A program made the position numbers and the translations under genes. A DNA stretch of 64,000 nt from Trichosphaerium sp. ATCC 40318 (Eukaryota; Protista; Tubulinea), in NCBI GenBank assembly GCA_038496445.1, contig JALMLS010000466.1:62001-126000 (forward strand), read 5' to 3'. Below are positions 45,870 to 64,000 of the stretch, in pieces (position 1 is the stretch's first letter; each line of letters opens with the position of its first letter). The notes beneath the pieces were generated by a model, which saw only the letters and a list, made by a program, of their open reading frames with translations, was not told the DNA's origin and made no database searches.

Positions 45870-48800
45870 ATGAGTCAAAATAACGACAAAAAGTAGACAG
45901 ACGCAGGCTTGGAATATATTGTGTTCTGGCCGTGCGAATCAATTAGTACGTTTGTAACTAACATTTTGACTTAACGATTAGTATCGTAGCTTCAGTGTGT
46001 TTAGATTAACAACCGACGAGCTGATTGGGCGGAAATCGTCAAAAGTTCACTAATATTTTTTTTTTGGCACGTGATACTGATTGACTTTTTAAAGTACAGA
46101 TGTGGGAAGAAAAAGAGTTAGAAGATTTCGAGACTACAAAAAAAAGCTATCTTGTAGAAGCCGGTGAAGATGGCCTAGTATTCGTACACGAGAAAAAGGA
46201 AGGCAGTAACACAGTAGATCTCTTCCTCTTGGAATACGGTAGAACATCCAACATTCTGGTTTTTTTTCTGTTTTTTTTTTCTGTTTCTCAGCTTCTCTGT
46301 AGGTTCATGGAAATGGAAGAAAATGAGATCATTTGAGATTGACACGGACATGAGACAATTTCCAAAATTTTTTATAGCACAAGGGAAGTTATGGAGTACG
46401 TTACATTCTTTTCTTTTTGCAATCTAAATTTTTTTTTTGACAGGTTTCTACTCAACACGAAAAATCAAAAGTTCAGTTGGATTATTTGATATTGAGTCAG
46501 GAAAGTACCAAAAGATACTTCATGTCAAGATTTTGGGAGATGCTATTTATGGTAGCTTACCTTTTGATCGTATTGGACATACTTGTATTGTACATGATGA
46601 AAAAGTAGGTATGTACATGTAGTTGAAAACCTACAATAAGTCATGAGTTGTTCTATGATCAATTTATACTAAACTTACCAATAGTCGTAATGGGAGGACA
46701 CCGTAATATTATTGGTTACCATTATGTAATTAAAGATGTACGAGAATTCAATCCAGGTACTACTTACCAATAAAACTGTAATTTATCAAAAAGATTGACA
46801 AGGTTTTTTAGAAACAAAGACATGGAGCATGTTATGCCGATGTTTAAAGAATTTGGATAGTCCAGGTGTGCTAATGGTTTAAGTTTCTTCTTCGTTTTAT
46901 AGCATTTACAGTAGGCATCTTTGTTTTGATTAACTTTATGTTTAATCAAAAGGAAAGGCCATAAAGTTTAGGACCTTCACTTTGTGCTACTATTTTTTTT
47001 CTTTGTGTTTACTAGTTAGTTGGACGGCAATGGCATGCAATGGCACCTGTAGATAAAGACCATATACTTATACATGGCGGCACCATAAAGCAAATAGGAT
47101 CTGTTGTTGGTACATTTGGACCGTAAAGCTCCTTTTTAACTAAGTACAAATTATAGGTGACTTATGGCTATTTCATGTCAAACGAAGAGAATGGACCAAA
47201 TGCAAGATTAATCGTGCTGTCATTATTGCTAGGCATACGTTAACAAAAGTTTGTCATAACAAGTGGGTGAGTTATGGTGGAATTACCAATGGCGGAAAGA
47301 TACATAACGAGACATGGTTACTAACACGTGGTACATACTAGTTTGGTTTTTCTTTCCTATTTCTTTCTCACCTACTTTTTCTTTCAAAAAGAGGAAAGAA
47401 CAATCAAGTTCAAATGGGAGCGATTGGAATGTACTGGTGGTCCACGTGTTTGCTTTCATAAGGCCGTATATATCCCGCATTTGAATAGTGTGTGTATTAA
47501 AGGTAATCTACAATTGGTTATGTAGTTATGTACTTACAAGCGTTCTAGGTGGTTACAGACACTATTATTTCGCTGCAAACAGTGTATACTTGTTAAATGG
47601 AGACGAGCTCTGGGGAAAGCAGTCAAATCCAACTGTTGGATCGTTAGATAAAAGTTACTTTACACCAGATGCGGTTTCGTATGAACAAGATGCGTTACAA
47701 GTCAATGAGTCAGAGGATGAGAGTAATGAAGAGGATTTTGATGAAAATGGCGAGGATATATTTCAGGTTGGTGATGAAGATAATTCAACAAGGCGAATAG
47801 CGCCTTCGCTTATCGAAAATGAAAGTGAAGTGGTTAGTGATGTATCAAATATTGTTAAGTTAATAGCGTATCAGGAGAATCTTCACTTCAACAGTAGCTT
47901 TTGGGATAGACCAGGAAGCAATGATACTGATTCATCAGACAGTGATGAATACGAAGAGAGCGAAAACAGTGTATTTAACGATATGATTGATGAATGTGCT
48001 GTATGAGACGTTTTTTTTTATTTGAAGAATTTTTTTATCTTTGTTACTCACGTGTTCGTAAAGGAAAAGTGGCATGAAGAAGAAGAACCGAAATTGTGTG
48101 CTTGGGATTTTTGGAGTTCGTTTAAGACCCAAGAGGATAGAGATATCAGACTTGATATATTTGAATATCCAAAACAAAAACAAATTAACAAAGTATGTTC
48201 TCTAGTACCTTTAAAACGCTTACAATTCACCCTAGCGTCTTAACGTTATTTCAAAGCTGCTTGGTGATAGGGTGTCTATTAATCAAGTCGAACAAACTGT
48301 TAACAATTATTGTGAATGCGAATGGAGAATAGGTGTGTTAGAAGGAGAAGAGCCTGAAAAACCTGAACCAAAGCCGAAACTGAAACAACTTCAGCGAACA
48401 TCTACCATCCCACAACACAGACCAATGAGTGATGGAACATCAGAATGGGTTGTTTTAGATAGTGATGATTCAGAAAGTGAAGGAGAGAGACCAGAAAATA
48501 GACACAACACTAGTACAAAGAAAGATGATGAGTTGGTGTTCCTAGGCCGTTTAGAAAGCAATCAATCCTCACCAGGTATGTAATCAAAACGCTTTGACAA
48601 GTGCTCAATATGTTTATTATCAATAGAAAATGAGCCAGTGTGTTCTTGGGAAATAGGCGGTGTAGTAAGAGAGGTAGGTGTAGAGTTGCCTCTTTATGAG
48701 GAATCCACACCCAAAAAAAGGAAAAGGCCTTCTACAACTGCACCGATGCTGAACCGGAATAGCCAGAAAAGGTATGCATATATTACAAGACGGGCTGTAG

Positions 48801-51308
48801 GATGGGTTTATGCTGACTGTATTTTTTTTGTTTACAGGGCCAGGGTAACTAAGAAAATAATATGGAAGGAAAAAGAAGTAACTGTTGATCTCATTCTAAA
48901 CCCGGAAGAAAAAGATAAAAGAAAGCACGTTTCAGTGCCAAAAGAGGTCAATACAAGGTGAACACCTTTCAACAACGTGCTGGATTATTCACTAACTTTT
49001 TTCAAAAGGCTACAAGACTTTCAGAGGAAAGGTGCAAAGTTTCTTTACAAGATAGCTACAACAACTGGAGTACGATATATTTTACTCGGAATATACAACT
49101 TGTTCGTGTTTTTTGCTTGCAGCAAACTTTGTGTCACATCAGCACAACTGAGAATACACTAGTTTTTATCATCTCGTTGTTTTTGTTTGCTTTATGTTTT
49201 TTAACCACGTGTTTTTTCATCTTTAGGGTATTCTTGGAGATGACATGGGTTGTGGAAAGACAGTTCAAGTCCTTGCTTTATTATACGCCTTTAAAGCATC
49301 TAAACCGACTGAAGTTATCAACCTTACTGGAGATAATCTATGGTATGATAATACTACTCTAGTAGTTGTGCCAAACATATTCATCCTTCAATCATGGCAA
49401 GGTACTCAACCTTAAAAAATGACAGTTAAGCCCTTGTGATGCTCATTCTCTCTCAGATCAAATCATTTCTTTCAATTCTCTTTTCTCCGACGAGCAAGAC
49501 CATTTAAAGCTTACTTATGGAGTGTACCATGGTAAGGATACTTTTACAGCATATGAGGATGTCAAGAAAGGATATGATGATATTCTACTAACAACAGCTG
49601 CGACATTGACTGGGAGTGATCACAAAGACAAACTCAATGTTGATTGGCGCATGATTGTCTTTGATGAAGTTCACATGTTCAAGAAAGACAGTGGGAAACG
49701 ATACAAGATATTGAAGGCGTTCAAATGCAAGTCAAGGATTGGTCTCACAGGTACTGTGTTTCAAAACAGTCCAAGTGAATTGTGGGCCACGATCAGCCTT
49801 GTGGTACGTTAGAAAGTCATTCACATTGTTTGTTCCTGATGTCTAAAGGTTAATGACTACATGGATAAAGGTTCATTTGAGAAGCAGTTCGCCGGACCAA
49901 TAAGACAAGCTCTATCTAATGAGGCATCTTACATTGATGTTGATCTTGGTGAAACTGCTGGAAAAGAACTACAAGAGCAATTGAAACATCTCATAGTAAG
50001 GAGGCACAGGAGTGTTTGGAACAAACCAGGATTACCACCTGCGCTACCACGTGCGTTCCCTCTACTTTCCTCAGCACTTTTTTGTAATTTTTTTAACTGG
50101 ATGTAGCTATAACAAACTATAAAATAGTCCTTCCTCTACTCAAGGAGCAAAAGATAAAGATGAACAAGATATTGCACCCGGGTGCTCACACCATAGTAGA
50201 AGCAGGAACAGCTAATAAAATAGCTGTTCGTACGTTGCAAAAATAACACGTGGCTTGTGATTTGATTTTTACCTTTTTTGTTTAGATCCTTTGCTACCTG
50301 ATGTGTATCAGAAAAAGATTAGACTTAGGGATATTGACTATAGAAATGTTTCTCAAGACTCGCTGAAGCTTCAATTTCTTGAAAAGGCTATTCGTTGGTT
50401 CTCAAAACAGGAGTCTTACACTAAAGTTTTATTGTTTTGCAAATATGTTAAGACGCTACAGTTTGTTGAAAAGTTTCTTCGAGCAAACAAAATAGCCAAA
50501 CATGTTAGAAAAATAATAGGTGATCAATCTGAGAACAAACGCTCAGAACACATCACGTGGTTCAAGAAATTAAAAGATAATGGTATTCTGTTGATAAGCA
50601 GAGACACGCTCAGTGAGGGTGTCGGAATAGTAGGTATGTGAAAATAAGAAAGAATGACGAAAAGGTAATTTTGTTCCTAACCAGTCTTTTATCTAGAAGC
50701 ATCTATAGTTGTATTTCTTGAACCATTCTTCAACCCATCAAAACATGCTCAGGCATCAGCAAGAGTACATAGATTTGGACAGAGTAAGTTTTGTCTACAC
50801 TTCAATTCCTCCTTTTTTCTTTTTTTTTTTTTCTCCTTCTTACTTATTGTTATTAGAATGTCACGTGCATACTTTTATGCTTGTTTCTGGTGCTATAGAG
50901 GAAAAAATTGAGCAAACGCAGTTAAAAAAGAAGATAACGCGTGCAAGGATGCTTGACAATGCACATGTAAAGGCTGTTGATGACAAAATTGTTACGTACA
51001 AAAAGCCTAAATTATCCAGCACAGATGCATCAGTTAAACCTGTCCTTATAAGCGATATGAGAAAAGAGATTGCAACAAACAACGCGCATCATAATATTCA
51101 TAGCGCTATGATTCAGATTGTCAAGGATTTGGCAGATGATGGTAAGATAATCGACTTGGAACTTAGATACCAAACATATAGCGAGTATAAAGCAAGCAAG
51201 GATATGATGAAGAAATTGAGTGAATCAAATGAGGATACAATTAAAATACTTGATAATGAAAACGCGAAAGAGTCTACTGGTCCAAGCATTGAGGATGTAA
51301 AAGATTAA
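45870..51308 (+). CDS. Kelch-repeat + uncharacterised domain + SNF2-family helicase (paralog A)
   Basis: Kelch: RIGHTCIV..VMGG, GRQWHAM..ILIHGG, GDLWLF. SNF2: LQDFQRKG, GILGDDMGCGKTVQ, IVFDEVH, RIGLTGTVFQNSPSELW, QASARVHRFGQ. The exons join in frame. The start codon is uncertain (45870 or 46100). Confidence 0.8.
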
Positions 51309-52433
51309 TTTTGTTTCCAATAAAACGCTCTTGTTTTACTGACAAGTGTAAATCATTTACTAACAACATTGACACTACAGAAAGGTGCAGGCTTGTTCTT
51401 TTAGATGTACAGAATGTAACAACCTGTGTTGAACCTTCCATCGTATTTGCGACATATGTGTGGATGCGATAAAGCGACAAACACGTTTAGATGCTCCTCA
51501 GCCCAAGCCATCTGCAAATATTGTTTTACCCTCATTGAAAGATGTTTAAACACGACAACTCGAGGCCTTTTTTTGGTACCTCACATAGTCCGCTACAACC
51601 AAATTTCTATGAGTGATGCGGTAGCAAGGCAGGGCGTAGGCCTTTCTGGGGCGCATATTAGACAGGATTTTTTGCACAAGAATCCATGGATTGGGTAAAA
51701 AAAAAACAATGTCAAAATAACTTTCTAGGTACAATTAATACAGTACAAATTACGCTTCCCAAAGCATAAGACTGAAATTAGAACAGTTTCTTTCCCTCTC
51801 CACGTCTAAGCCGATTACTGTTTTTAGCTACATGTGTGCCTAGTGCGAACGGGAAGTATTTCCACGTTTGAACTAACACCGATAGTTTGTTTGGACGTTT
51901 AGCGTGTGTAGTACCTCTCTACAGAAACATACATACAACGACTCTACTTAACTCCACTAGTTCCGTCGTTCTAATAGCTGTCTCGTATTGTCACCACCTA
52001 CGTAAGTTTCAAATTTCCATAGCCTGCACTCTTATTCGATGGTGTATGTTAGTTAACACGCAGGTACGCTCTTATTCACTACCGCGTCATACAACGCGAG
52101 TGTCCTTTCACTTAAGCCGCAGGAAAAAAAGTGGTAATTTTGTAGGAGAGCGTGTCACTATTCTGTACTGGTAACCATATATGTTATAAAAGCTACCCGT
52201 CATACTGTGGTTTTGTTCTAAAGCTTCACTACAACCGAATATTTCCTAGCAATCCCAGAACATTTTAACTGCCGGCAATTCACGAAAAAAAACAAAGGCT
52301 GACTTAAGTCGCATGGCATATATTCTGAACATAACAATAATTACATACAAGAACAACAACAACTCTTGTTTATACACCCACCCTCTTTTAAAGAAAAAAA
52401 AAAGGATACAAACATCAATCGTAGCATACAAAT

Positions 52434-53296
52434 ATGAGTGATAATCAAAAGTCATTTTTTGAAAAGCAGTTCGGAAAGAAAGCTGATTGGCATCATACAG
52501 ATCCAACAAAAGAATGGTGGTTAGGTCATCCTTTCACTAAAAAGGCTCACTTGGATTACGTTGGTTCGTACAAGCTAGCACATGACCCAAAGCACTTTCA
52601 AATATTTCGCTTTCCAAACGATATTCATCATACAAAGAGGTCTTTCTACAGCGTATGGATAAGAAATCCTGGCGTACGTCAACTTTGATTTTCTCCACAA
52701 AACGATAAAACAAGTTAACCTGTCAAGCACTCTTCTTGTATTTCTCTTCTTTTAATCGCCCAAACGGCAACAGGTTTTCACAACTTGGTTTTAAAAAAAA
52801 ACCGTTTAAATCTTGAATAAAAAAAACGTTTTCCCCATCACCTTACACTCGTTTTAACGTCTCTCACGTGATTTCTGACGCTCCTTCTTTAGAAAAATAT
52901 GCAGCTAACACTAGTCACGTTGGGTTTTACAGCAATCGGCTATTTTATACTTTACCGCCTTCAATGGCTTGATAACTCCATCAGGTATGTAACGAACTTT
53001 AGGCGGTTTTTTTTTGTTGAGATCCTTCAATTAAAAAACAGTTTAGCTGGAAAGCAAAGCCAATACCGCACTTAGAACATAAGTCCTACCATGGCATTGA
53101 ACGGTATAAGATCCTAGGTTATGGCATGGGACCACAATACCTAAGGTTACAGAGTATTGAACCTAGTATTGTACCTGGTGTTCCAGAGCAAAGCGAGTTT
53201 ACTCCAATGGCAGAATACTCAACCAGACAACAACCTTCTCCAATTAAATTTGATCTTGACTCGTTTAACAACTTAGCAAATCAAGACTGGGACTAA
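52434..53296 (+). CDS. Single-pass NDUFA4/B12D-like mitochondrial protein (3 exons)
   Basis: The spliced WIRNPGKNMQLTLVTLGFTAIGYFILYRLQWLDNSISWKAKPIP..ERYKIL resembles the NDUFA4 pattern (P-TM-RL-x6/7-W-x3/4-P-x-P..YK). Confidence 0.55.
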
Positions 53297-53562
53297 GACC
53301 TTTGTAATAGCTGTAAATAAAATAAAATCAATGCAACCTAGTAACCACACGTGCCATTTTCGTTCAGAACTTCAGTTTCTAAGGATTTCGTTAATGTTTC
53401 ATGTAATGCCATATCGTATACTAGATTGACTAGAATCGTATCTTTACTTACCTACAAGCGTTGTACCTTTTCACTTACCATTAATCAAAGCGACTTAGGT
53501 ACAGTATGTTTAAGGCGATAGGTACCAGAGCAAGAATACAGTAGATAATTTTTTTTATTTTG

Positions 53563-56500
53563 TCATTGCTCAAGTTCTGAATATTCACTCTTGTCGTCAT
53601 CTATCCCAAATTTTTGTCCCTTAGCATAGTTCGAATCTAGTTCATTCATAAAGTCTATATTGACACCGTCAAGTACAGATTTTAAGTCAGAATCAGATAC
53701 AACAAGAGACATTGGTTGCAATGTTCCTTTAAGATCGTGTATGATTTTCATGATTGCACTGTCATTTCCTTGTTGCGCTCTGTTCTCAGCAATCTTTCTT
53801 CGTATATCAGAAACACTGATAGGATCCTTGACACTAAACAAAGAGCTCAATATTTAACATTCAAAATTTTTTTGCTTTGTGAAACACGTGAAAATCACAT
53901 GTACCTAAGGAATTGTACTTCATCAGAATCAGTGTTTTTATCCTTGCTAGATGACGTGCTATCATTTTTGCTTGGATCATTACTGGGTGTTGCGCTATTC
54001 TCTTGCTGACTTTCTATCCGTTCTGTAACACAGTCTAAATCAGTGCTTGGGCCGTTGAAATAAAGGTCCTAAACGATACAATAATGAGTTGATTTATCAA
54101 GATTGGTATTCAAAGTTGTATGCGTACATCTCTATCAAGACATTTGAAGTGGCTCACGTTATCTATGAGTTTAGCACCCATACTTTTCTTCCAAATTTGA
54201 AGTTTGAAAATGTGTTCTTCTAATTCACCTGCAACAAGTGTATACGTCTTTACATGCTTTTCTACGACGCCAACGAGTTAATACTATTACGACAGTTTTT
54301 TAAATGCGTACTTTGACCAAATCTATGCGCACGTGCAGATGCTTGATCGTGCTTAAATGGATTACAAAATGGTTCAAAGAATACTACAACGGAAGCTTCT
54401 AAAAAAAATTCAATCAAAGCATCCAGATAACCACTATCATACCGACAAGTGCAACGCCTTCACTAAGTGTATCTTGACTAATCAATAGAATACTTGGCTT
54501 CTCTTGGCTCTGGAACTCTTTGATATATCTCTCTCGCGTTTTTTGGGTAACTTCTCCGGTGATACACTCACTGTCATAGTTTTTACACTTCAAGAACTTC
54601 TTTATGAGGTGCAGTGCCTTTACTTTTCTAGAGAATATCAGAACTGATTCTCCCCTTTCCTTCCACACTTTGATAGCTTTCCAATAAATTCTAGTTTACA
54701 AGAGTCATTTGCATAGGACTCCTGTACTATTGCATCTTCTGATACCAAAGAATGTAAATGTTTATCTAGTGTATCATCTCCTACGATCAGATGCTCGTTA
54801 TAATACTCAAACACAAGCCTCAAATCTAGTGTATAACTTTAGTATGGGCTATTTATACTAGTATCGGTATTAAATACGCACGTGCGGCTATACACTGTGA
54901 TGCATGCATCAGTTCAAGGAATGAAAGTCTTTTTTTTGTTGTCAGAGTAAAATACGATTCAATGCTCCAGTACTTACTTGGGGTGGGTTTTCTTCATCTG
55001 TTTCATTGCCATCTCTTGATAATGGCGCAATGGTAATATAAGTGCACAGTTTGTAATATCTATACAAAAGGTCATTAAAAGCAATTCCTTTTTTTTTTCA
55101 AATACCTGGAAGTGCAGCGTGCATGTTTTCAGTTTTATTCCACACAGTGCGATGTCGTCGAAGAAGATATTTCTTTAAAGTGCTTTGTAACTCTAGTCCT
55201 TTCTCTGTTCCAATACGTATAGTCTCTGGATCTGCACTATAGCATAAAGCGCTAATTATTGGCTTACTGAACTTTTTCTCAAAATGTTTCCAGCTCATAA
55301 ACTCTGACTAAACCACGTGATTAGAAATCAATATTAGAAGAAACTGTAAGAAAGTAGAATGTGTTTGCGAGATAAAAAACCAACGTTCGATTATGAGGAT
55401 GACACAGGCAGGTGAGAGTTGTGTTTCTAAATTTTTTCAAAGAAAAAAAAAATTGATATCGTACAACAATGTTAAACGTCGCCCATAACTCCCTCGTGTT
55501 ATTTTGAAAAACTGTGCCAGAAAGCCCAATTCTTGTCTTGCATTTAAGGTTATTAATGCATTTATAACGTTTCCCTGCAGTGTTTTTGAACATGTGTACT
55601 TCATCAATCAATATTAACCTCCATGGTTTGTCAAGTTCATCCAAGTTTTTTGCAAGTGTAGCAGCTGTAGTCAAGACTATATCACAAGAATCAGCAGTTT
55701 GAAAAGCTCTTCTACGGTTCTGTCCATGGTAAAGAGCACACTTAAGCTGGTAAGTACCAACCTCACCATAGAGCCTATTGAAACGCCCTATTTGATCTTG
55801 CCATGATAGCATAATCAAACGATTAGGCACAATAACAAGGGTTGTCTCAGTCCACTTTTCTTTTGTTTCTGATAGATCACAGTACGTCTTAAAAGCATAC
55901 AAAAGAGAAAGAGCTTGTACAGTCTTACCACAACCCATGTCATCACCCAGAATTCCCTGAACAGTACCCAATTAGTCGTCAAAAAAAACCTAAAAAAACA
56001 CGTGCTCCTGTCTTGTGTTTGTATATACGGTATAAAAACTTTACACCAACACGTTGAAACGGTTGTAGCCTATTAGATATTGAGAGTAAATATACATACA
56101 AGACATAAATTGACTTTACCTTGTGTTGATTTCTTGAGGTACCACAATATGTTTTCCAGTTTCTCGGCAATACTCCAGGTCAAGAGGGTCTTTCGCTGGT
56201 ACATCTTCCCACAAGTAATCTTCATATTTCCGTTTATCAGTCCGACTAGACGTAAAAGTTAAACAAAGAGACATCTTTAACTTCAAAGCCCCCAGTGAGG
56301 ATATTTAACTTGTAAATTTTGCGAACTCTCAACTTTGAAAAAATACTTTACCGTTTCTTTTTTTTGGTAGGAATGATAGTTTGGGCTTTTCGTTTTCTTG
56401 AGATTTCAATAACATTGTTGTCGTCCTCATCCATATCATCATAACCATCACCAAATTCACTATCTTCATCATTGTTACTATCTTCTTTGCTATCACTTCC

Positions 56501-59500
56501 ACCAGTAAGATCGATAACATTTGCGTTAGGTGTTGCAGCTGTAGTTGGAATTGAGTCCATAGGTATGGATGTAGTTAATGGAACATCTTTTGTTATTTCT
56601 TCCATACTATCCTCCAAGTCATTAACATCATCTTCATCTGCAATAAAGTCGGACATGTCATCTACAACCTGGGTAGCGTGCTGTACAGTAGATTTTTCAA
56701 CAGAGTTATCCTGGCTACTTTCAAGGCTAGGCTCAGGTTCTGGTTCATTGGGCTTGTCTGGTTCTGGACCACTCAATACACTTATACGCCAGCTAATTTC
56801 AAGGCTATTTTCTACTGTTGTTTGAAGCCCACTACACCTACGCTTCTTATTGGATTCTGTTACTTTACCTTCTTCATTTATAAGTTTGATTAGCTTCTTC
56901 AACGCCTGGTAAGAAATTAGTTTGGAATACATAATCAAAAGAAAAGGTAAAAACCAAAAACTGGGTGACACGTTTTTTCTTTCAATGGTTAGTTACCTTG
57001 TCACACTTTTGTTCGTCGTCATGTAGAATCTTAAGTTTTATTTCTTTATCTGGATTATCATGCCAGTAAGTCCAAGCACAAAGGTTTACCACCACGTTTT
57101 CTTCCCAATTAGTCTAGAGGGTAGAATAAGTATCAAGTTCGGGTAAAAAAAAAGACAAACATACTGTAAACTCTTCAATAGCTTCGTTTACCAAAGGTTG
57201 AATAACGACTTCTTCTGAGTCTATATCCTTAACGAGTAATTAATATTGGAAATGACATATATATGCTATCTAGCACGTGTATCTTACTTCTTCTCCTGAA
57301 AGATCATCAAAGTTGACGATATCTGACTAAACCACTAATGTAAGCCAAAAAAAAAACTTAGTCCAAACTTACTGTGTCTTCAACTAATTCTGGTTGTACA
57401 CGGCGGATTGGCAGTTCCTCAGGAGCGAAATCACCTTGAATTTCTTCATCCATTGAATCCGAAAAGTTGTTATCAAAAGGCGCTACAGTCATTACATTGC
57501 CACTGATAGACGTTGAGGTTCCCAACTTAAAGAACTCCAAAGCCACCTTAACAATTACAATTAATTTGCTTTCATCTCATTCAAAAAACTCAATCACCTT
57601 TTCTAGAGCTTCGCTGGATAGTTCATCATCATATCGTATACCATTCACTCGTATACCATCCTATAAAAATAATTAAAGATGAACTGAATATCGCTTTTGA
57701 TTATTTTTACCTTCTTGAACTGAGAATCACATTGCTGTACTAGAGATACTACATGATAAAATGAGTTTGCCTCCTAATATGTTAGATGCTGTTAGACATA
57801 CCTAGGGCTTCTTTACCCGTGATAGGTAAACCGAGAAGAATAGAACCACCCATAGGTTCTTCACCTAAAAACCTTGTCAAAAAAGGTAAGTAAACAAAAA
57901 ATAATCAGTACCTGAAAAGCATCCATAATTTTGACGTTTTAAAAAAGTTGTTGCTGTTCTCAAGGTATTTTTTAGCTCAATCATATCTACCTCTCCATCA
58001 ATAGAAAGGCAATCATGAGAACTATTGCAATCCTTTCGTGAACAATCAACAATAAGATCAAACCTAATATAATTATCAGCAATACTTGACCAATGTGCAA
58101 ACCCTTACCCTCCATAACGCTTAACACAGTCACACATTGCTTCTGCAAAGGAATCTTTGATAGTTTTTGTAACCAATCCACCTAAATGCGTAAACAAACT
58201 TAACACCGATCCAGGAGACAAAAAACTCGATGTTTGACTTTGTACCTTCTTCAATATCGTCCAGCTCCTCTTGGGTTTGTGCTATAGCATGAACATTACA
58301 CCCAGCATGAACAAATAACTAAATTAAAGTAATTAGAAGTACTATAAAGACAAGAAAGAACACACCTTTAAAACAGCTTCACCAAGAATTGTCGAGGCAC
58401 CAACAATAATTACAACCATACTCGGACAACCAAGTTCCTTAGTGACACTATTTTCTTTCTGTACTGGAACATCCACACTGTGTTCAGACATCTCAAAATG
58501 CCTTTCAATACTTGGAAGGGCTGTAAACTGACCAATAGACATGGCCCAATGTATCTCTTTAATTTTCTCCTCAAACATCTTACTAAGTACTGTAGCTTCG
58601 GGTACCTGCTTTCTCGTTAAAGTTCTGCCGTTTTGTCACTATTTTAATATCCGTACTGTCTTTGCAATAGCAATAAGTCCAATACCTCTTATAACCACTA
58701 TTTCAGGGTAGAGTAAAGATGTTTCTGACTGGTATGCATCAAACTCGTTCAACAAATGTTCCCCGAGGTCTTGCTCATCTGAGCTAGGACACTCGATAAA
58801 TAGGCATCCCTTTAGAGTAAAAGCATAAGAATAATATAGGTTATATCCTAAACACAGAAAAAGAAGACTGTCAGTACCTCTATTTTTGCAAGGTGATTCG
58901 CAGTCTTCATTATAATTTTTATCCATTCTTCTGCTTGCTCTGATTGGGCAAACTTTAGGATTTCGTTATCTTCATTTTGTACAACTACATAACGCTGCCC
59001 TAACGTTGTCCATATTAATCCACGTAATACCTAGAGGCACGTTAGGTATTATAAGTCTGCAACAGACAAAATAAACGCACAGGAGCCACTAGTGAGTATG
59101 AAAGATAATTCTTTGAAGGAGTCTGAGAAAGAGCCATTTTTTGGTGCCTATCAAGAAACTCTCGAATCTTCTGTATTGCTAATAATTGCGCATTATATGC
59201 TTTTTCATATGTATCACCAAAAGTGATCAAACCATGATGCATTACAACAAGACCTAACACCAAGTTATTTCTGATTATTTTCTTCAAAAAAACAATAACT
59301 TTGTGTTTGTCTATTTCATACCCACAAACGATTTTGATTGTTTTTGTACTTCAACAACACACTTAACTAATTCAAGTATATTATGAGAGTAAGAAACTAC
59401 ACCAAAATCTTCTCCTAGAGCCTAGGAAAGGTGTAAAGTTTCGAAGTGGAAAGAAAAGCTGTGATTTTACCTGTTTTATAAATTTGTCATCTGTTTGGTT

Positions 59501-61692
59501 AACGAGTGCTAATACTTCACTCGAAAAAGATTCATTGACAAATTTAAAAGGTAAAACCAGATGTAAAAGCACATTGAGTGGCCTGAAAAAAAAAGGTTAA
59601 ACTAAGAAAAAAAGAGGAATAACAACGCACGGTCTAACATCGCTGTTTGAGAATTCTCTAGCACTGCAAAGCTCGGTATACACTTTCTCGTTAGATGCAA
59701 CTGCTTTCACACACCTTACATGAAGGTAAGATAATAGGAACTACTAAAAACCGTACATAAACGCAAACTTATGTGTATGCAAAACAATGTTGCATCGGTT
59801 GAATATCAGCTAGCGAACTGCCACGTGGATTGATAGCTATCTAGCAAATAAAAGTAAACACTAAATAACTTGTTCTAAGACCTCCTTGTACTTTTGTATC
59901 TTTACCAAGCCAACTAGTTGTTGTATACTTCACAGAGCAATGACCGTTTAAAAATGCTTGTCTGTGATAATTGAATAAGCAAAAAATATGACCAAATAAG
60001 TATTAGACGTACTTATCAACGTTACACAGCACGTGATTTAAAAAACATCGTAATTTCAAATCTGGGCACACTTCATCTCCAAAACGTTCTATATACTCTT
60101 CAACTGCATCGAGTTAAGTCTAAAAGTACTCTCATGAAAAACAAGGCATTACCTTCCAAAAGCGGATCTGGATCAATCTTGTCGTCAATAGAACTCTCTC
60201 GAGATTGATCGCTGAAGGTCTCATCTACATCCATTACATCATTTGTTGAAGACAATAAATACTTCTTGCTCTTAAACCATGGGAACATCTCATGTTGTTT
60301 AGCAGGAAGCTCTATGTTACTCAATATCAAAGCATCTGTGGCCATGTCAAATAATTTCGGAATACTGGTCCAAAGATAATCGCCCAGTAACAAGTAAATA
60401 GTGTCCAAGCGTCTCATCTTGTTATTGTGGCCTTTTATCCGTTAATTTATTTGTTAAGTTCTACTTCTCGCTTTGAGAGTTCAGACTCACCATAAGTAAG
60501 TATAGCATTCAATTTCTTGATGTAAACAGATCTATGATTAAAACAAGGTTTAGGAGCATCTCTGACTTCAAGTTTACGCCAGGTAAACTCCAAGGTGCTC
60601 TCTTCAACAAGCTGTCAGATATAATTTTTAAAAAAAGTCAAACAAAAACTTTAAAGGTGTACCCCGTGTGAGAAGCCATGTGTCATTCATTAAGGTTCCA
60701 TCACAATCTAGGCCGCCATGTAAAATCCACTTATTTTCTTGCACACGTGTTAATGTATGATTAGCACGTGGCAACTGTTTGGCATGGCACTTCTTCCAAT
60801 TAATGGCATTCCTGGAGCTATCGTAAAGCCACAAGTCTCCTATAAAACACCATTAGTCCACACTTCAGTTCTAGCACATACCCAAAACCTTTCCATCATC
60901 TTTCTCGCCAATATGCCCACCGTGAACAATAGCACACGTACCGCCTGCAGGCGCCATTGCATGAAATCGTCTTGCCTCTAAATTGTTAACAAAGATGTAC
61001 ATACAAATATGGTAAACGCACGTGCTCCAGTATAGGGTTCTTCACCACGCATTTGCCAAGCATATCCTATATCCATTAATTCGTACACCCATACATCATG
61101 TTGAAGCGTGTTGTTACTATCACCTCCAAAAAAAACTGAAAAGCGTCAATACAATCTAAGTGTCACTGATTTGTTCTTACCAACATTTTGATTGTCCAGT
61201 AGTGCACTAGCATAACCAATTCTATTACCAGGTCCCCACGTATCCTTCAAAAGTAAGGTCAATCAAGAAAATCCACAAAAGCTCCACCAAAAATCCAAAA
61301 ATCCAAAAAAAAGTGAAACCTACATCATCACCAAGATCATAGTATTCTTTGGTGTCAAATGAATACTTGCTAACCATACTTTTACCTGGTGCGTTACCCA
61401 AAAAGCCTGTCAATAAATCAGATAATGTGTAAAAATCATCCAAATACACAAAACGCACTGTACAGTTCACCATTAAGCATATGATAAGTAGCGTGTTGGC
61501 GTACAGCTCCTTTTGGAGCCAAAGGAGCTAGTTTTTCCCATAACCAACCCTCTGCGCTTGTATTAGCGGTATTACGTAAAATATAATACCATGGCGTATC
61601 GTACGGTTACTTTTAGTATTCAACAGTTCGTTGACGTCTGGTGGCTTTTTAGGTAACTCTAACCACCTACAATGACAACTATCACGTTTCAT
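53563..61692 (-). CDS. Kelch-repeat + degenerate class II aldolase/SDR + uncharacterised domain + SNF2-family helicase (paralog B)
   Basis: Kelch (RQWAPA..LFTVG, GDLWLY, RANHTL..ILHGG, NDTWLL) at ~60400-61400; aldolase/SDR-like region at 57480-60103; SNF2 motifs GILGDDMGCGKTVQ, ILIDEVH, RIGLSGTVFQNNTRELW, QASARAHRFGQ. It shares intron positions with paralog A. One junction (~59700-59790) needs a weak or GC donor, and the start is approximate. Confidence 0.75.
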
Positions 61693-61953
61693 TGCTCCTA
61701 ATGACGCATTGAAAATCCTGTATGTTAAGCTAGGCACTAATTGTACCAAATTCACGCGCGAAAACCGGTTAGCTGTCAATGGCTACTTAAAGGTGTGCAC
61801 ATGTGCGTCGTTAGTTGGGCATACTACAGTCTAGACAAAGTGCACCAGGCTTCATTTTAGAAATCACGTGAGTTGTCTTTAAATCAGAAAAGGATCTCGG
61901 TTTGTTGGAAAATGAAGGTGTTTATTGCTTCTTGGCCTTCCATAATCAATAAT

Positions 61954-62279
61954 TTACATAAAGAGTCTTCCATCTTCGTCCCACCATGTATAATTACCGT
62001 TTGGTTCAGCGTAGCTTAAAGCTGAAGTTGTCGATTGTCAAACCGCTCTTTAAATTCACCATGCTTTCTACTATCAACCCACCCTTGTACTGTTGTTGTC
62101 CGTTTTGATACCATTGTGTACCCGCCAAATTGCACTCCATTAACATACTCTTTATGCATCTTGATTGGTCCGTTCTCATACCATTCCTTGTATTCACCAT
62201 GTATCTCAGCATTAACAAAAGTAGTAAGTACTTTTAATTGCCCATTTGAAAACCACTCCTTGTGCACCCCATTTTCCAT
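61954..62279 (-). pseudogene. Intronless MORN-2/YwqK-type repeat gene remnant
   Basis: NGVHKEWFSNGQLK, HGEYKEWYENG, QWYQNGQ (shifted frame), HGEFKERFDN, an in-frame TAA, then GNYTWWDEDG. This requires two frameshifts and a premature stop. Confidence 0.75.
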
Positions 62280-62398
62280 AGCATTGCTAACCTTGGGTGG
62301 ACTGTGGCTTTGACAACATTTTTTTTGTTGAAACATCTCAAGGCTCACTTATGAAATAATGACGCTTGGTTAAAAATACAGCACAACAACTGAGGCTT

Positions 62399-64000
62399 TT
62401 ATTTATGTGTCCATGAAAAAAATATCTTTTTTTCTGATGCATCAGAAAAAGTTGGTACAAAGTTAATATCGTGGACTTCTTTAATTCCTTCAGCAAGATT
62501 TGGATAAGTATATTTCTTATTAAAAACATGATAAGCAATATCAGGGATTAGTTTCCTTTGCCCTTCTAGTCAAAAGAGTTAGAAAACATTTCACAAACAG
62601 CTGAGTTTGTTTTTTCCTTTTCAGAGCAACCAAAGTGGCGTACTTGTCTTAAAGGTTCTCAATTGGTTCAAATGTCTGCACAAGTCCTTAGGCGCTAAAG
62701 TAACAAAGCACCTCACAGGTACACCTGTGAAGAAAATAATAAGAAACAAAAGATAATGGATTACGTCTATTTTCATACCAAAAGATTTGGCGACTTTTAT
62801 GTAACGTGCACGTGCAGCTGCATCAGGGTTTGTATTATCTATCACTATACTCTTTCCACTCTAAACAATATAATTAGCGTTATAACAAACAATTAGATAC
62901 CGCCATACCCTAATACACTCTTTAGTCTTCTTAACGCATTTGTCTTGTGATCCAAGCTCATCCTGAGCCAAGTTAGTTTTTGACCGAAAGAAAAAAGTGA
63001 AGAAAGTGGCAACGCTTACCCTGCTTATACGAATGTAGCCTGCTGGGATCAAGTAACGCTTTACAAACGAAGATTTTCCAGATGCCTGTATACCAACCAT
63101 AATTATCATCTCTAGTTCATCAGATGTCAAGTTAGCCATACCAGACTAAATTCAACAGAGTTATGATAAATATTAACTTAGGTTTGTGTGTACCGGAAAT
63201 ACTTGAATGTTATTGGCTTTCACTTTCTTGTAATAAGCTTTAGGATCGAAACTATTCCAGCTCCATACTGTAGGTGGAGGGTCTCCATGAAAAAACTCTT
63301 CTGGCGTTTGAAATTGAATTCCAATGTTTGCAGCAAACTTTCTATTCAAAAAGTCAGTTAAGCGACAAAAAAAACAACAAGGTATACCTGTCACTACAAG
63401 AAAAATCTCCTGGCTTTAAAAAAAGATTAGTGAGGCGATTTACTACAATGTGAACGTACTCTACCAGCTGCATCGCCTACATACCTTTGAAAACAAGTGA
63501 GAAAAAAAACGTTTTGTACGGCAAATAAACTGTAAAAAAATGAACTAAAAAAAAATAGACGTACAAGCAGTTTGCCATATCTGGAGCTATTTTGTTGTTT
63601 GAGTAGTTAATCATATTATCCCACATTGTAGTATTTGGCTTTCTAAAATGATCTTTCTTTGATGAAATGAAAGCTTGCATTGGTACTCCAAGCTGTAGAC
63701 AAAACGGTAAACACCTTCAAAAAAAAAAAGAAAAAAAAAGATCAAGTACCCTTTGTATCATATCATCGATCTTTCCTGTTAAACTTTCTGGCGATTGTTT
63801 CTTTGAAGCAATACCAGCTTGATTTGTAAATATAACAATCTTGTATCCTTTATCATAAAAAAACTTAAGTCTAGTAACAACCTTGTCCGACCACCACTGC
63901 CAATCCTGCCAAACAAATTAAAAAAAAACACTACAGAAAAAAAACCCAAACAATGCCTGACAGCCCAGCAACGCCATCAAACACCAACAAGGCTTTTTTG
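62399..64000 (-). CDS. PNKP: Bifunctional polynucleotide kinase 3'-phosphatase, 5' part outside the window
   Basis: GYKIVIFTNQAGI, FRKPNTTMW, YVGDAAGR, DFSCSDRKFAANIG..TPEEFF, kinase P-loop MVGIQASGKSSF, VIDNTNPDAAAR.Y; ends KIFFSWTHK*. Confidence 0.95.

Follow-up and report, generated by a model that had tools for sequence, protein, structure and literature searches.

A 64-kb stretch of DNA from the protist Trichosphaerium sp. ATCC 40318 (contig JALMLS010000466.1, positions 62,001 to 126,000), hereafter the window, carries two long convergent genes, A and B, each of which joins a Kelch β-propeller to an SNF2 ATPase motor. This combination is real and unusual, and no relative of it was found. 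We consider it probable that A and B are ancient inverted tandem duplicates of a lineage-specific, Kelch-targeted nuclear SNF2 ATPase, that B holds in addition a captured pseudoenzyme, and that the pair does not resemble the paired nucleotide-binding leucine-rich repeat receptors (NLRs) of plants.

Between 45.8 and 61.8 kb the window consists of eukaryotic DNA, rich in introns and with a GC content of ~37%; the introns are of the GT-AG type and short, with a median of ~50 nucleotides (nt). Two runs of stop-free segments, on the + strand (~46100-51308) and on the - strand (61692-53563), are the basis for reading two long split genes, which lie tail-to-tail with 2.25 kb and another open reading frame (ORF) between them. 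Splice models were obtained with a small dynamic-programming script that used peptide anchors drawn from the similarity between A and B; unanchored ab initio models either skipped the short Kelch exons or over-spliced, and the anchored models were used instead. In the predicted model of A the 19 introns measure 43-157 nt, and across both genes the 57 predicted introns span 42-287 nt, all but one being 166 nt or shorter. The original prediction, made from the letters of the window alone, had read two genes on these strands with the order Kelch propeller, acidic linker, small domain and SNF2 ATPase. Pfam matches and the splice models agree with that layout, with the most likely ATG of A at 46100 and not at 45870.

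One exon of each gene matches Pfam Kelch models above threshold. In A, exon 47157-47330 matches Kelch_4 (E 6e-6; 26.5 bits against a cut-off of 21.6), and in B, exon 60839-60663 matches both Kelch_4 (E 3e-8; 33.8 bits, same cut-off) and Kelch_3 (E 2e-6; 28.2 bits against a cut-off of 22); the B propeller also has weak Kelch matches in the PDB. The remaining blades, encoded by exons too short for the Pfam models, were read from the GG/W pattern in the spliced models. In both genes a single exon encodes the last blade together with the linker, and the linkage from Kelch to SNF2 is visible in the compact gene A, where no intron is longer than 157 nt. Between linker and motor sits a small domain of ~100 amino acids (aa), which resembles DUF7607 (PF24580) below the threshold of that family (24.8 bits in B, E 2.5e-5, and 16 bits in A, against a cut-off of 27) and over the C-terminal half of the profile only; the exons encoding its N-terminal half, each scanned alone, gave no Pfam match. 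Basic stretches resembling nuclear localisation signals (NLS) stand upstream of the motor in both genes, PKKRKRP in A (48710) and KRKAQTIIPTKKKKR in B. The C-terminal tail of A belongs to no Pfam family. We also observed, within exon 48627-48957 of A, an in-frame stretch of 66 nt (48772-48837, + strand) that starts with GTATGC, ends in a T-rich tract plus CAG and was removed as an intron under one parameter set of the script; this could be an additional intron, or one that is retained or used alternatively.

The motor itself is that of the SNF2 family: in both copies the N-lobe carries motifs I-III and the C-lobe the signature Q-x-x-x-R-x-x-R-x-G-Q. An exon of A matches SNF2-rel_dom (PF00176) with 48.3 bits against a cut-off of 24.9, the N-lobe of B is recognised through matches in PADLOC, the PDB and the Atlas, and Helicase_C (PF00271) is matched by both genes (34.2 bits in A and 45.3 bits in B, cut-off 23.5). 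The motifs for ATP binding and hydrolysis (GCGKT, DEVH and QASARxHRFGQ) are intact in A and B, and over the 30 residues of the motif VI stretch the two are 80% identical. They also have unusual features in common, namely LSEGV(G/A) in motif V, and EPF(F/C)NP at the block whose usual SNF2 form is D-x-x-W-N-P. Like the eukaryotic remodellers (CHD proteins with their chromodomains, HLTF/Rad5 with HIRAN, ERCC6/CSB, Swr1/Ino80), A and B place a recognition domain before a two-lobed motor, and share with them SNF2-rel_dom, Helicase_C and motifs I, II, III and VI. They differ in their targeting module, a Kelch propeller that turned up in none of the other SNF2 proteins searched, in the strong divergence of the C-lobe, and in EPF(F/C)NP. 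The N-lobe of B matches the PDB remodellers Swr1, Ino80, ISWI, Snf2, Chd1, DDM1 and ERCC6 with E values from 7e-15 to 1e-8, and no named subfamily stands out among its PDB matches (Swr1, Ino80, archaeal SSO1653 and SMARCA5 all score 51-58 bits).

Where, then, are the relatives of this motor? A phmmer search with the N-lobe exon of B against 1.84 billion cluster representatives returned 15041 matches, the best of them 43% identical (E 3.5e-18). The best SNF2 matches are uncharacterised bacterial-type proteins at ~40% identity with SNF2_assoc, SWIM or DUF3670, one of which is annotated as RapA. The N-terminal 700-1290 residues of A and B had no match in 156 proteins (the best SNF2 matches together with their cluster members), and a Pfam scan found a Kelch domain in 0 of the 45 best SNF2 matches; the papers searched hold nothing on the combination of Kelch and SNF2, nor on DUF7607. 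The prediction that no known SNF2 subfamily has an N-terminal Kelch propeller thus stands, with the proviso that the homology and Pfam searches used single exons, the former within a length window, and may have missed full-length relatives. With the DUF7607-like exon, a word-based search gave no match and the Atlas search was uninformative.

By score, the ATPase core lies nearer to bacterial-type SNF2 proteins than to the PDB remodellers of eukaryotes. Exon 55465-55956 (- strand) of B scores 82 bits against bacterial-type SNF2 and at most 58.5 bits against the eukaryotic remodellers represented in the PDB; PADLOC models for ZorD and DpdE score 84.6 and 77 bits against the N-lobe of B, and its nearest Atlas clusters are mostly bacterial. 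The ZorD, DpdE and Atlas matches would serve as a lead on origin and not as a sign of membership, considering that any SNF2 core would match. A bacterial origin of the SNF2 core of A and B is possible. The bacterial-type proteins with SNF2_assoc/SWIM ('RapA-like'), ZorD and DpdE, the best matches of the B N-lobe at 43% identity or less, differ from A and B in that they do not have the N-terminal region in common, and in that A and B are intron-rich eukaryotic genes. No relative emerged from scans with peptide patterns specific to the family, whether of metagenomes, which returned a single prokaryotic-type SNF2 fragment, or of viruses, which returned two weak generic matches. The metagenome fragment (contig L123:6-704, + strand) encodes an intron-less SNF2 C-lobe with an N-P-S-K-H-D-Q-A variant of the W-N-P block, as in A and B, so that this variant is also present in prokaryotic or phage-type SNF2 proteins.

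That A and B descend from one gene is clear from their alignment. They are collinear from the propeller through to the C-terminal tail, both by blastp of the stop-free segments and by tblastn of A against the DNA of B, and a global alignment of the gene models gives 39% identity overall. Twelve of the 19 introns of A stand at an identical column and in identical phase in B, and a thirteenth is off by one column. The original prediction had described a tail-to-tail pair of diverged paralogs separated by a small ORF and had quoted three matching intron junctions; the description is borne out, and all three junctions are identical in column and phase. One intron of A in the SNF2 N-lobe (49402-49456, + strand, 55 nt) has no counterpart in B, where 55956-55465 (- strand) is a single exon of 492 nt; on these gene models, the difference is an intron gained or lost after the duplication. 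Synonymous sites have reached saturation between A and B (pS 0.68-0.91), a sign that the duplication is old. This value speaks for an old pair and not for fast evolution, as had been suggested, and it renders the proposed estimate of the ratio of non-synonymous to synonymous change (dN/dS) per domain uninformative. No third copy of the gene was found within the 64-kb window.

The main difference between the two genes is one of content. Nearly all of the sequence specific to B (~560 aa) falls in one slot, at B residues ~301-983, between the propeller and the ~100-aa domain. Four exons of B match, in order, the NCBIfam PRK08324 models of a bifunctional aldolase/short-chain dehydrogenase (SDR), whose whole-protein cut-offs are inapplicable to single exons. 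We built a local hidden Markov model (HMM) of the aldolase/SDR family from 50 of 120 ORFs, taken from bacterial genes with a conserved peptide from the PDB alignment. The open segments of B match this model collinearly over positions 39-599, the matches from position 39 being weaker, and the spliced model of B covers positions 106-595 of 667 with 161 bits (E 2.3e-51). In blastp, more than 500 aa align with bacterial homologues at 26% identity (E 1e-44), and the homology to PRK08324 is full-length and collinear. A whole aldolase/SDR module in B, at the place where A has only an acidic linker, had been predicted and is confirmed by this match in one slot. Searched against plasmids with tblastn, a B aldolase exon had 0 matches.

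Is the module truly part of the B protein, or is it an artefact of the gene model, a nested separate gene or a spliced-out remnant in a gene whose protein would be Kelch-SNF2 like that of A? In favour of an artefact count the search that listed 0 RNA runs, a path-finding script that can find an open path in any case, and the stop at ~60100 that the Kelch-linker exon meets without the splice at 60152. Yet to skip the module would demand an intron of ~2.6 kb, against 42-287 nt for all predicted introns. The module lies on the strand of B, and its first homologous open segment (60113-60006) contains 0 Met, which leaves it no separate start codon at that place; introns of 166 nt or less, with one exception, leave no space for separate promoters. 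Moreover, ~560 codons have stayed open across 16 introns at only 26% identity to the bacterial homologues, and the combination of so many introns with an unbroken frame points to long residence and to selection for an open frame. What is probably the last SDR strand also shares its open frame with the second acidic linker, although the match is weak: in open segment 57576-57361 the SDR C-terminus aligns collinearly without reaching significance (score -1.6), and was not used in arguing for the fusion. Taken as a whole, we regard an artefact of this kind as improbable, and retain the reading of B as a single gene with a captured module.

What was captured is no longer an enzyme in any recognisable sense. 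B retains 35 of the 116 columns in which the bacterial set is conserved to 94% or more. The HxH metal ligands are replaced by E475 and F477, as is also evident against PDB 3m4r, and the third metal-ligand His is kept, in HGLITFGDT; the TPDH..RTK and EYW.LE.AKL blocks are lost. The TGxxxGxG motif for nicotinamide adenine dinucleotide (NAD) reads VGASTILG, its second Gly having become Ile, and the NAG motif has become SR. The catalytic Tyr/Lys pair is incomplete in both plausible splice models, with Tyr replaced by Pro in the chosen model and Lys lost in the alternative. Thus the catalytic equipment of the family (three His, TGxxxGxG, NAG and Ser-Tyr-Lys) is not present as a set in B, and, judged by these residues, the aldolase/SDR module is catalytically dead. 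Compared with rhamnulose-1-phosphate aldolase/SDR-type enzymes of the PRK08324 kind, the module aligns collinearly over almost the full enzyme and keeps HGL-x-TFGDT, and differs in being 26% identical, catalytically degenerate, interrupted by 16 spliceosomal introns and embedded in another protein.

Could the whole of B, and not only its module, be on the way out? Three-frame translation and overlapping tblastn high-scoring segment pairs in two frames reveal an apparent 1-nt frameshift near 54684, in lobe 2 of the ATPase. Frame 2 ends in ..DSCKLEFIGK, aligned with the S-x-K-L block of A, and homology to A resumes in frame 1 as WKAIKVWKERGES ... VLIF, at overlapping coordinates. A 66-codon open stretch, which our model places within the longest of its 'introns', has a coding potential of 0.10 per codon, like real exons, and a search by hand for a way of splicing that would leave the S-x-K-L block in frame found none. 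The simplest reading is that a GG run near 54684 has lost 1 nt, either by an assembly error or by real damage and early decay. In the latter case B could be a decaying paralog, born of an accidental fusion with an enzyme gene, with A alone functional and the frameshift as its first visible lesion. The position of the frameshift, within a conserved SNF2 block, would fit, as would the loss of every checked catalytic motif of the module and the several weak splice donors that the B model requires. On the other hand, B has kept all ATPase motifs and 50-54% identity to A in its motor despite saturated synonymous sites, its ~1850 codons are open apart from this one site, which points to long purifying selection, and the loss of one G from a GG run is the kind of mistake that assemblies typically make. 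We hold decay to be unlikely, and continue to read A and B as two retained duplicates.

The original prediction went further, and likened the pair, as fast-evolving NTPases with a swappable inserted domain, to paired NLRs with integrated decoys. To plant pairs such as RGA4/RGA5 and RRS1/RPS4, the likeness is that of adjacent paralogous NTPase genes, one of which has an extra non-catalytic domain. However, paired plant NLRs are built on a STAND NTPase (NB-ARC/NACHT) and stand head-to-head with a common promoter, whereas A and B are SNF2 proteins of superfamily 2 (SF2) and stand tail-to-tail. No NB-ARC/NACHT core was found in A or B, where Pfam gives ATPase domains of the SNF2/Helicase_C type only, and neither the head-to-head arrangement, nor an insert that varies between copies, nor rapid or diversifying evolution, all typical of NLR-decoy pairs, is seen; nothing ties the pair to infection. 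Nor is the swappable slot supported, considering that there are two copies only, one with the insert and one without.

Nevertheless, a sensor/helper division of labour deserves to be spelt out: the dead aldolase/SDR of B would be a decoy or ligand sensor, and A the executing translocase, in the detection of pathogens or metabolites. An integrated dead enzyme in one paralog and none in the other, the adjacency of A and B over a long time, and the presence of the defence helicases ZorD and DpdE among the nearest SNF2 cores (though any SNF2 core would match) can all be cited for it. Against it speak the type of NTPase and the orientation of the genes; two copies, the only ones within the window, do not show a slot that varies, rapid evolution cannot be shown at saturated synonymous sites, and B is perhaps frameshifted. 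We give such a pair very little credence, and no observation points to ligand sensing by the dead module. A bolder variant, in which the dead module still binds a sugar phosphate or nicotinamide cofactor and thereby gates the SNF2 motor, making A and B a metabolite- or pathogen-responsive DNA translocase whose slot accepts other sensor domains, we credit with just as little; if true, it would amount to a sensor of eukaryotes in which an SF2 motor takes the place of a STAND NTPase.

We instead posit the following course of events for the pair of Kelch-targeted SNF2 ATPases. Both genes join a Kelch propeller to an SNF2 motor by way of an acidic linker, which is disordered, and of a small domain that the two have conserved; an old duplication gave the inverted tail-to-tail pair. 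By analogy with their families, the propeller would act as the targeting module and bring the enzyme to a partner protein or a mark, the motor would translocate on double-stranded DNA and move or strip a protein-DNA complex, and the NLS-like stretches would direct the protein to the nucleus. After the duplication, the linker of B captured a complete bifunctional class II aldolase/SDR gene, which then lost its metal ligands and its NAD-binding and catalytic motifs, and stayed open across ~17 exons. The module has probably been retained for a non-catalytic role, as a scaffold or as a piece for oligomerisation or for the binding of a ligand, and not as an enzyme.

Several points weigh against this scenario. 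The gene models are predictions tuned with A/B homology anchors, from a script that always finds some open path, and a search for sequencing runs over 55950-61900 listed 0 RNA runs. The C-lobe is strongly diverged, with a single weak PDB match and with LSEGVG in motif V in place of GG-G-LNL, and, going by this divergence, ATPase activity of A and B is not certain. The frameshift near 54684 may mean that B is no longer functional. Finally, we infer the Kelch partner, DNA translocation and nuclear location from what is known of the families.

The features of the two genes are collected in Table 1. The small ORF between them has modest coding potential, belongs to no Pfam family and had no homologue in a word-based search of a 5.8-billion-cluster protein collection; it may be a real orphan gene, or no gene at all. 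Upstream of the start of B, on the - strand, lies a gene with MORN_2 repeats (33.8 bits) and beyond it a weak match to an AAA_33 P-loop kinase-like domain, also on the - strand, both in the region of 62019-62348 and 62861-63139. The window gave no match in scans for Rfam families or tRNAs.

Table 1. Predicted features of genes A and B and of the interval between them, followed by the identity of A and B for each domain.
Feature	Position	Strand	Description
Gene A	46100-51308	+	20 exons, 1314 aa; Kelch - acidic linker - DUF7607-like domain - NLS - SNF2 ATPase - conserved tail; homology-anchored splice model, exon Pfam matches
A Kelch β-propeller	46100-47613	+	~5-6 blades, last motif YLLNGDELW; collinear with B propeller
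A acidic linker (empty slot)	47614-48000	+	within uninterrupted exon 47549-48000, as is the last Kelch blade
A ~100-aa domain	48064-48361	+	LCAW..W ... W-R-I-x-V-L-x-G-x-E-P; 43-nt intron inside; conserved with B
A SNF2 ATPase core	49009-50783	+	GCGKT, DEVH, GTVFQN, RRHR, EPFFNP, QASARVHRFGQ
A C-terminal tail	50857-51308	+	~30% identity with B
Small ORF between A and B	52434-52685	+	84 codons from ATG, unverified; from ORF list
Gene B	53563-61692	-	~39 exons, ~1850 aa; layout of gene A plus ~560-aa aldolase/SDR module within linker; splice models, Pfam, collinearity with A
B Kelch propeller	60370-61692	-	last motif YLLLGDYLW
B aldolase/SDR module	57472-60153	-	residues ~373-935; 16 introns, ~17 exons; open throughout; catalytically degenerate
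B second acidic linker	57165-57471	-	continues open frame from probable SDR end; open segment 57576-57361
B ~100-aa DUF7607-like domain	56753-57113	-	weak match to PF24580; aligned with A
B SNF2 ATPase core	54312-56068	-	GCGKT, DEVH, GTVFQN, RRHR, EPFCNP, QASARAHRFGQ
66-codon open stretch in B	54641-54838	-	within 287-nt predicted 'intron' 54977-54691, longest of 57
A/B identity, Kelch			36%, global alignment
A/B identity, small ~100-aa domain			38%, global alignment
A/B identity, SNF2 N-lobe			54%, global alignment
A/B identity, Helicase_C			50%, global alignment
A/B identity, C-terminal tail			32%, global alignment

These findings have no bearing on a long-standing open question, and we see their value as moderate pending transcripts and relatives. 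SNF2 motors are directed by their accessory domains, and a Kelch propeller as targeting module would, if true, be a new way to recruit such a motor. Odd fusions are common in protist genomes; a whole dead metabolic enzyme lodged in a linker would, if true, clearly exemplify how an enzyme acting on chromatin or DNA can capture a pseudoenzyme, and A and B together form a natural comparison, with and without the insert, for its function. Should the SNF2 core indeed derive from a bacterial-type SNF2, the pair would represent a bacterial helicase that has been re-fitted with eukaryotic domains.

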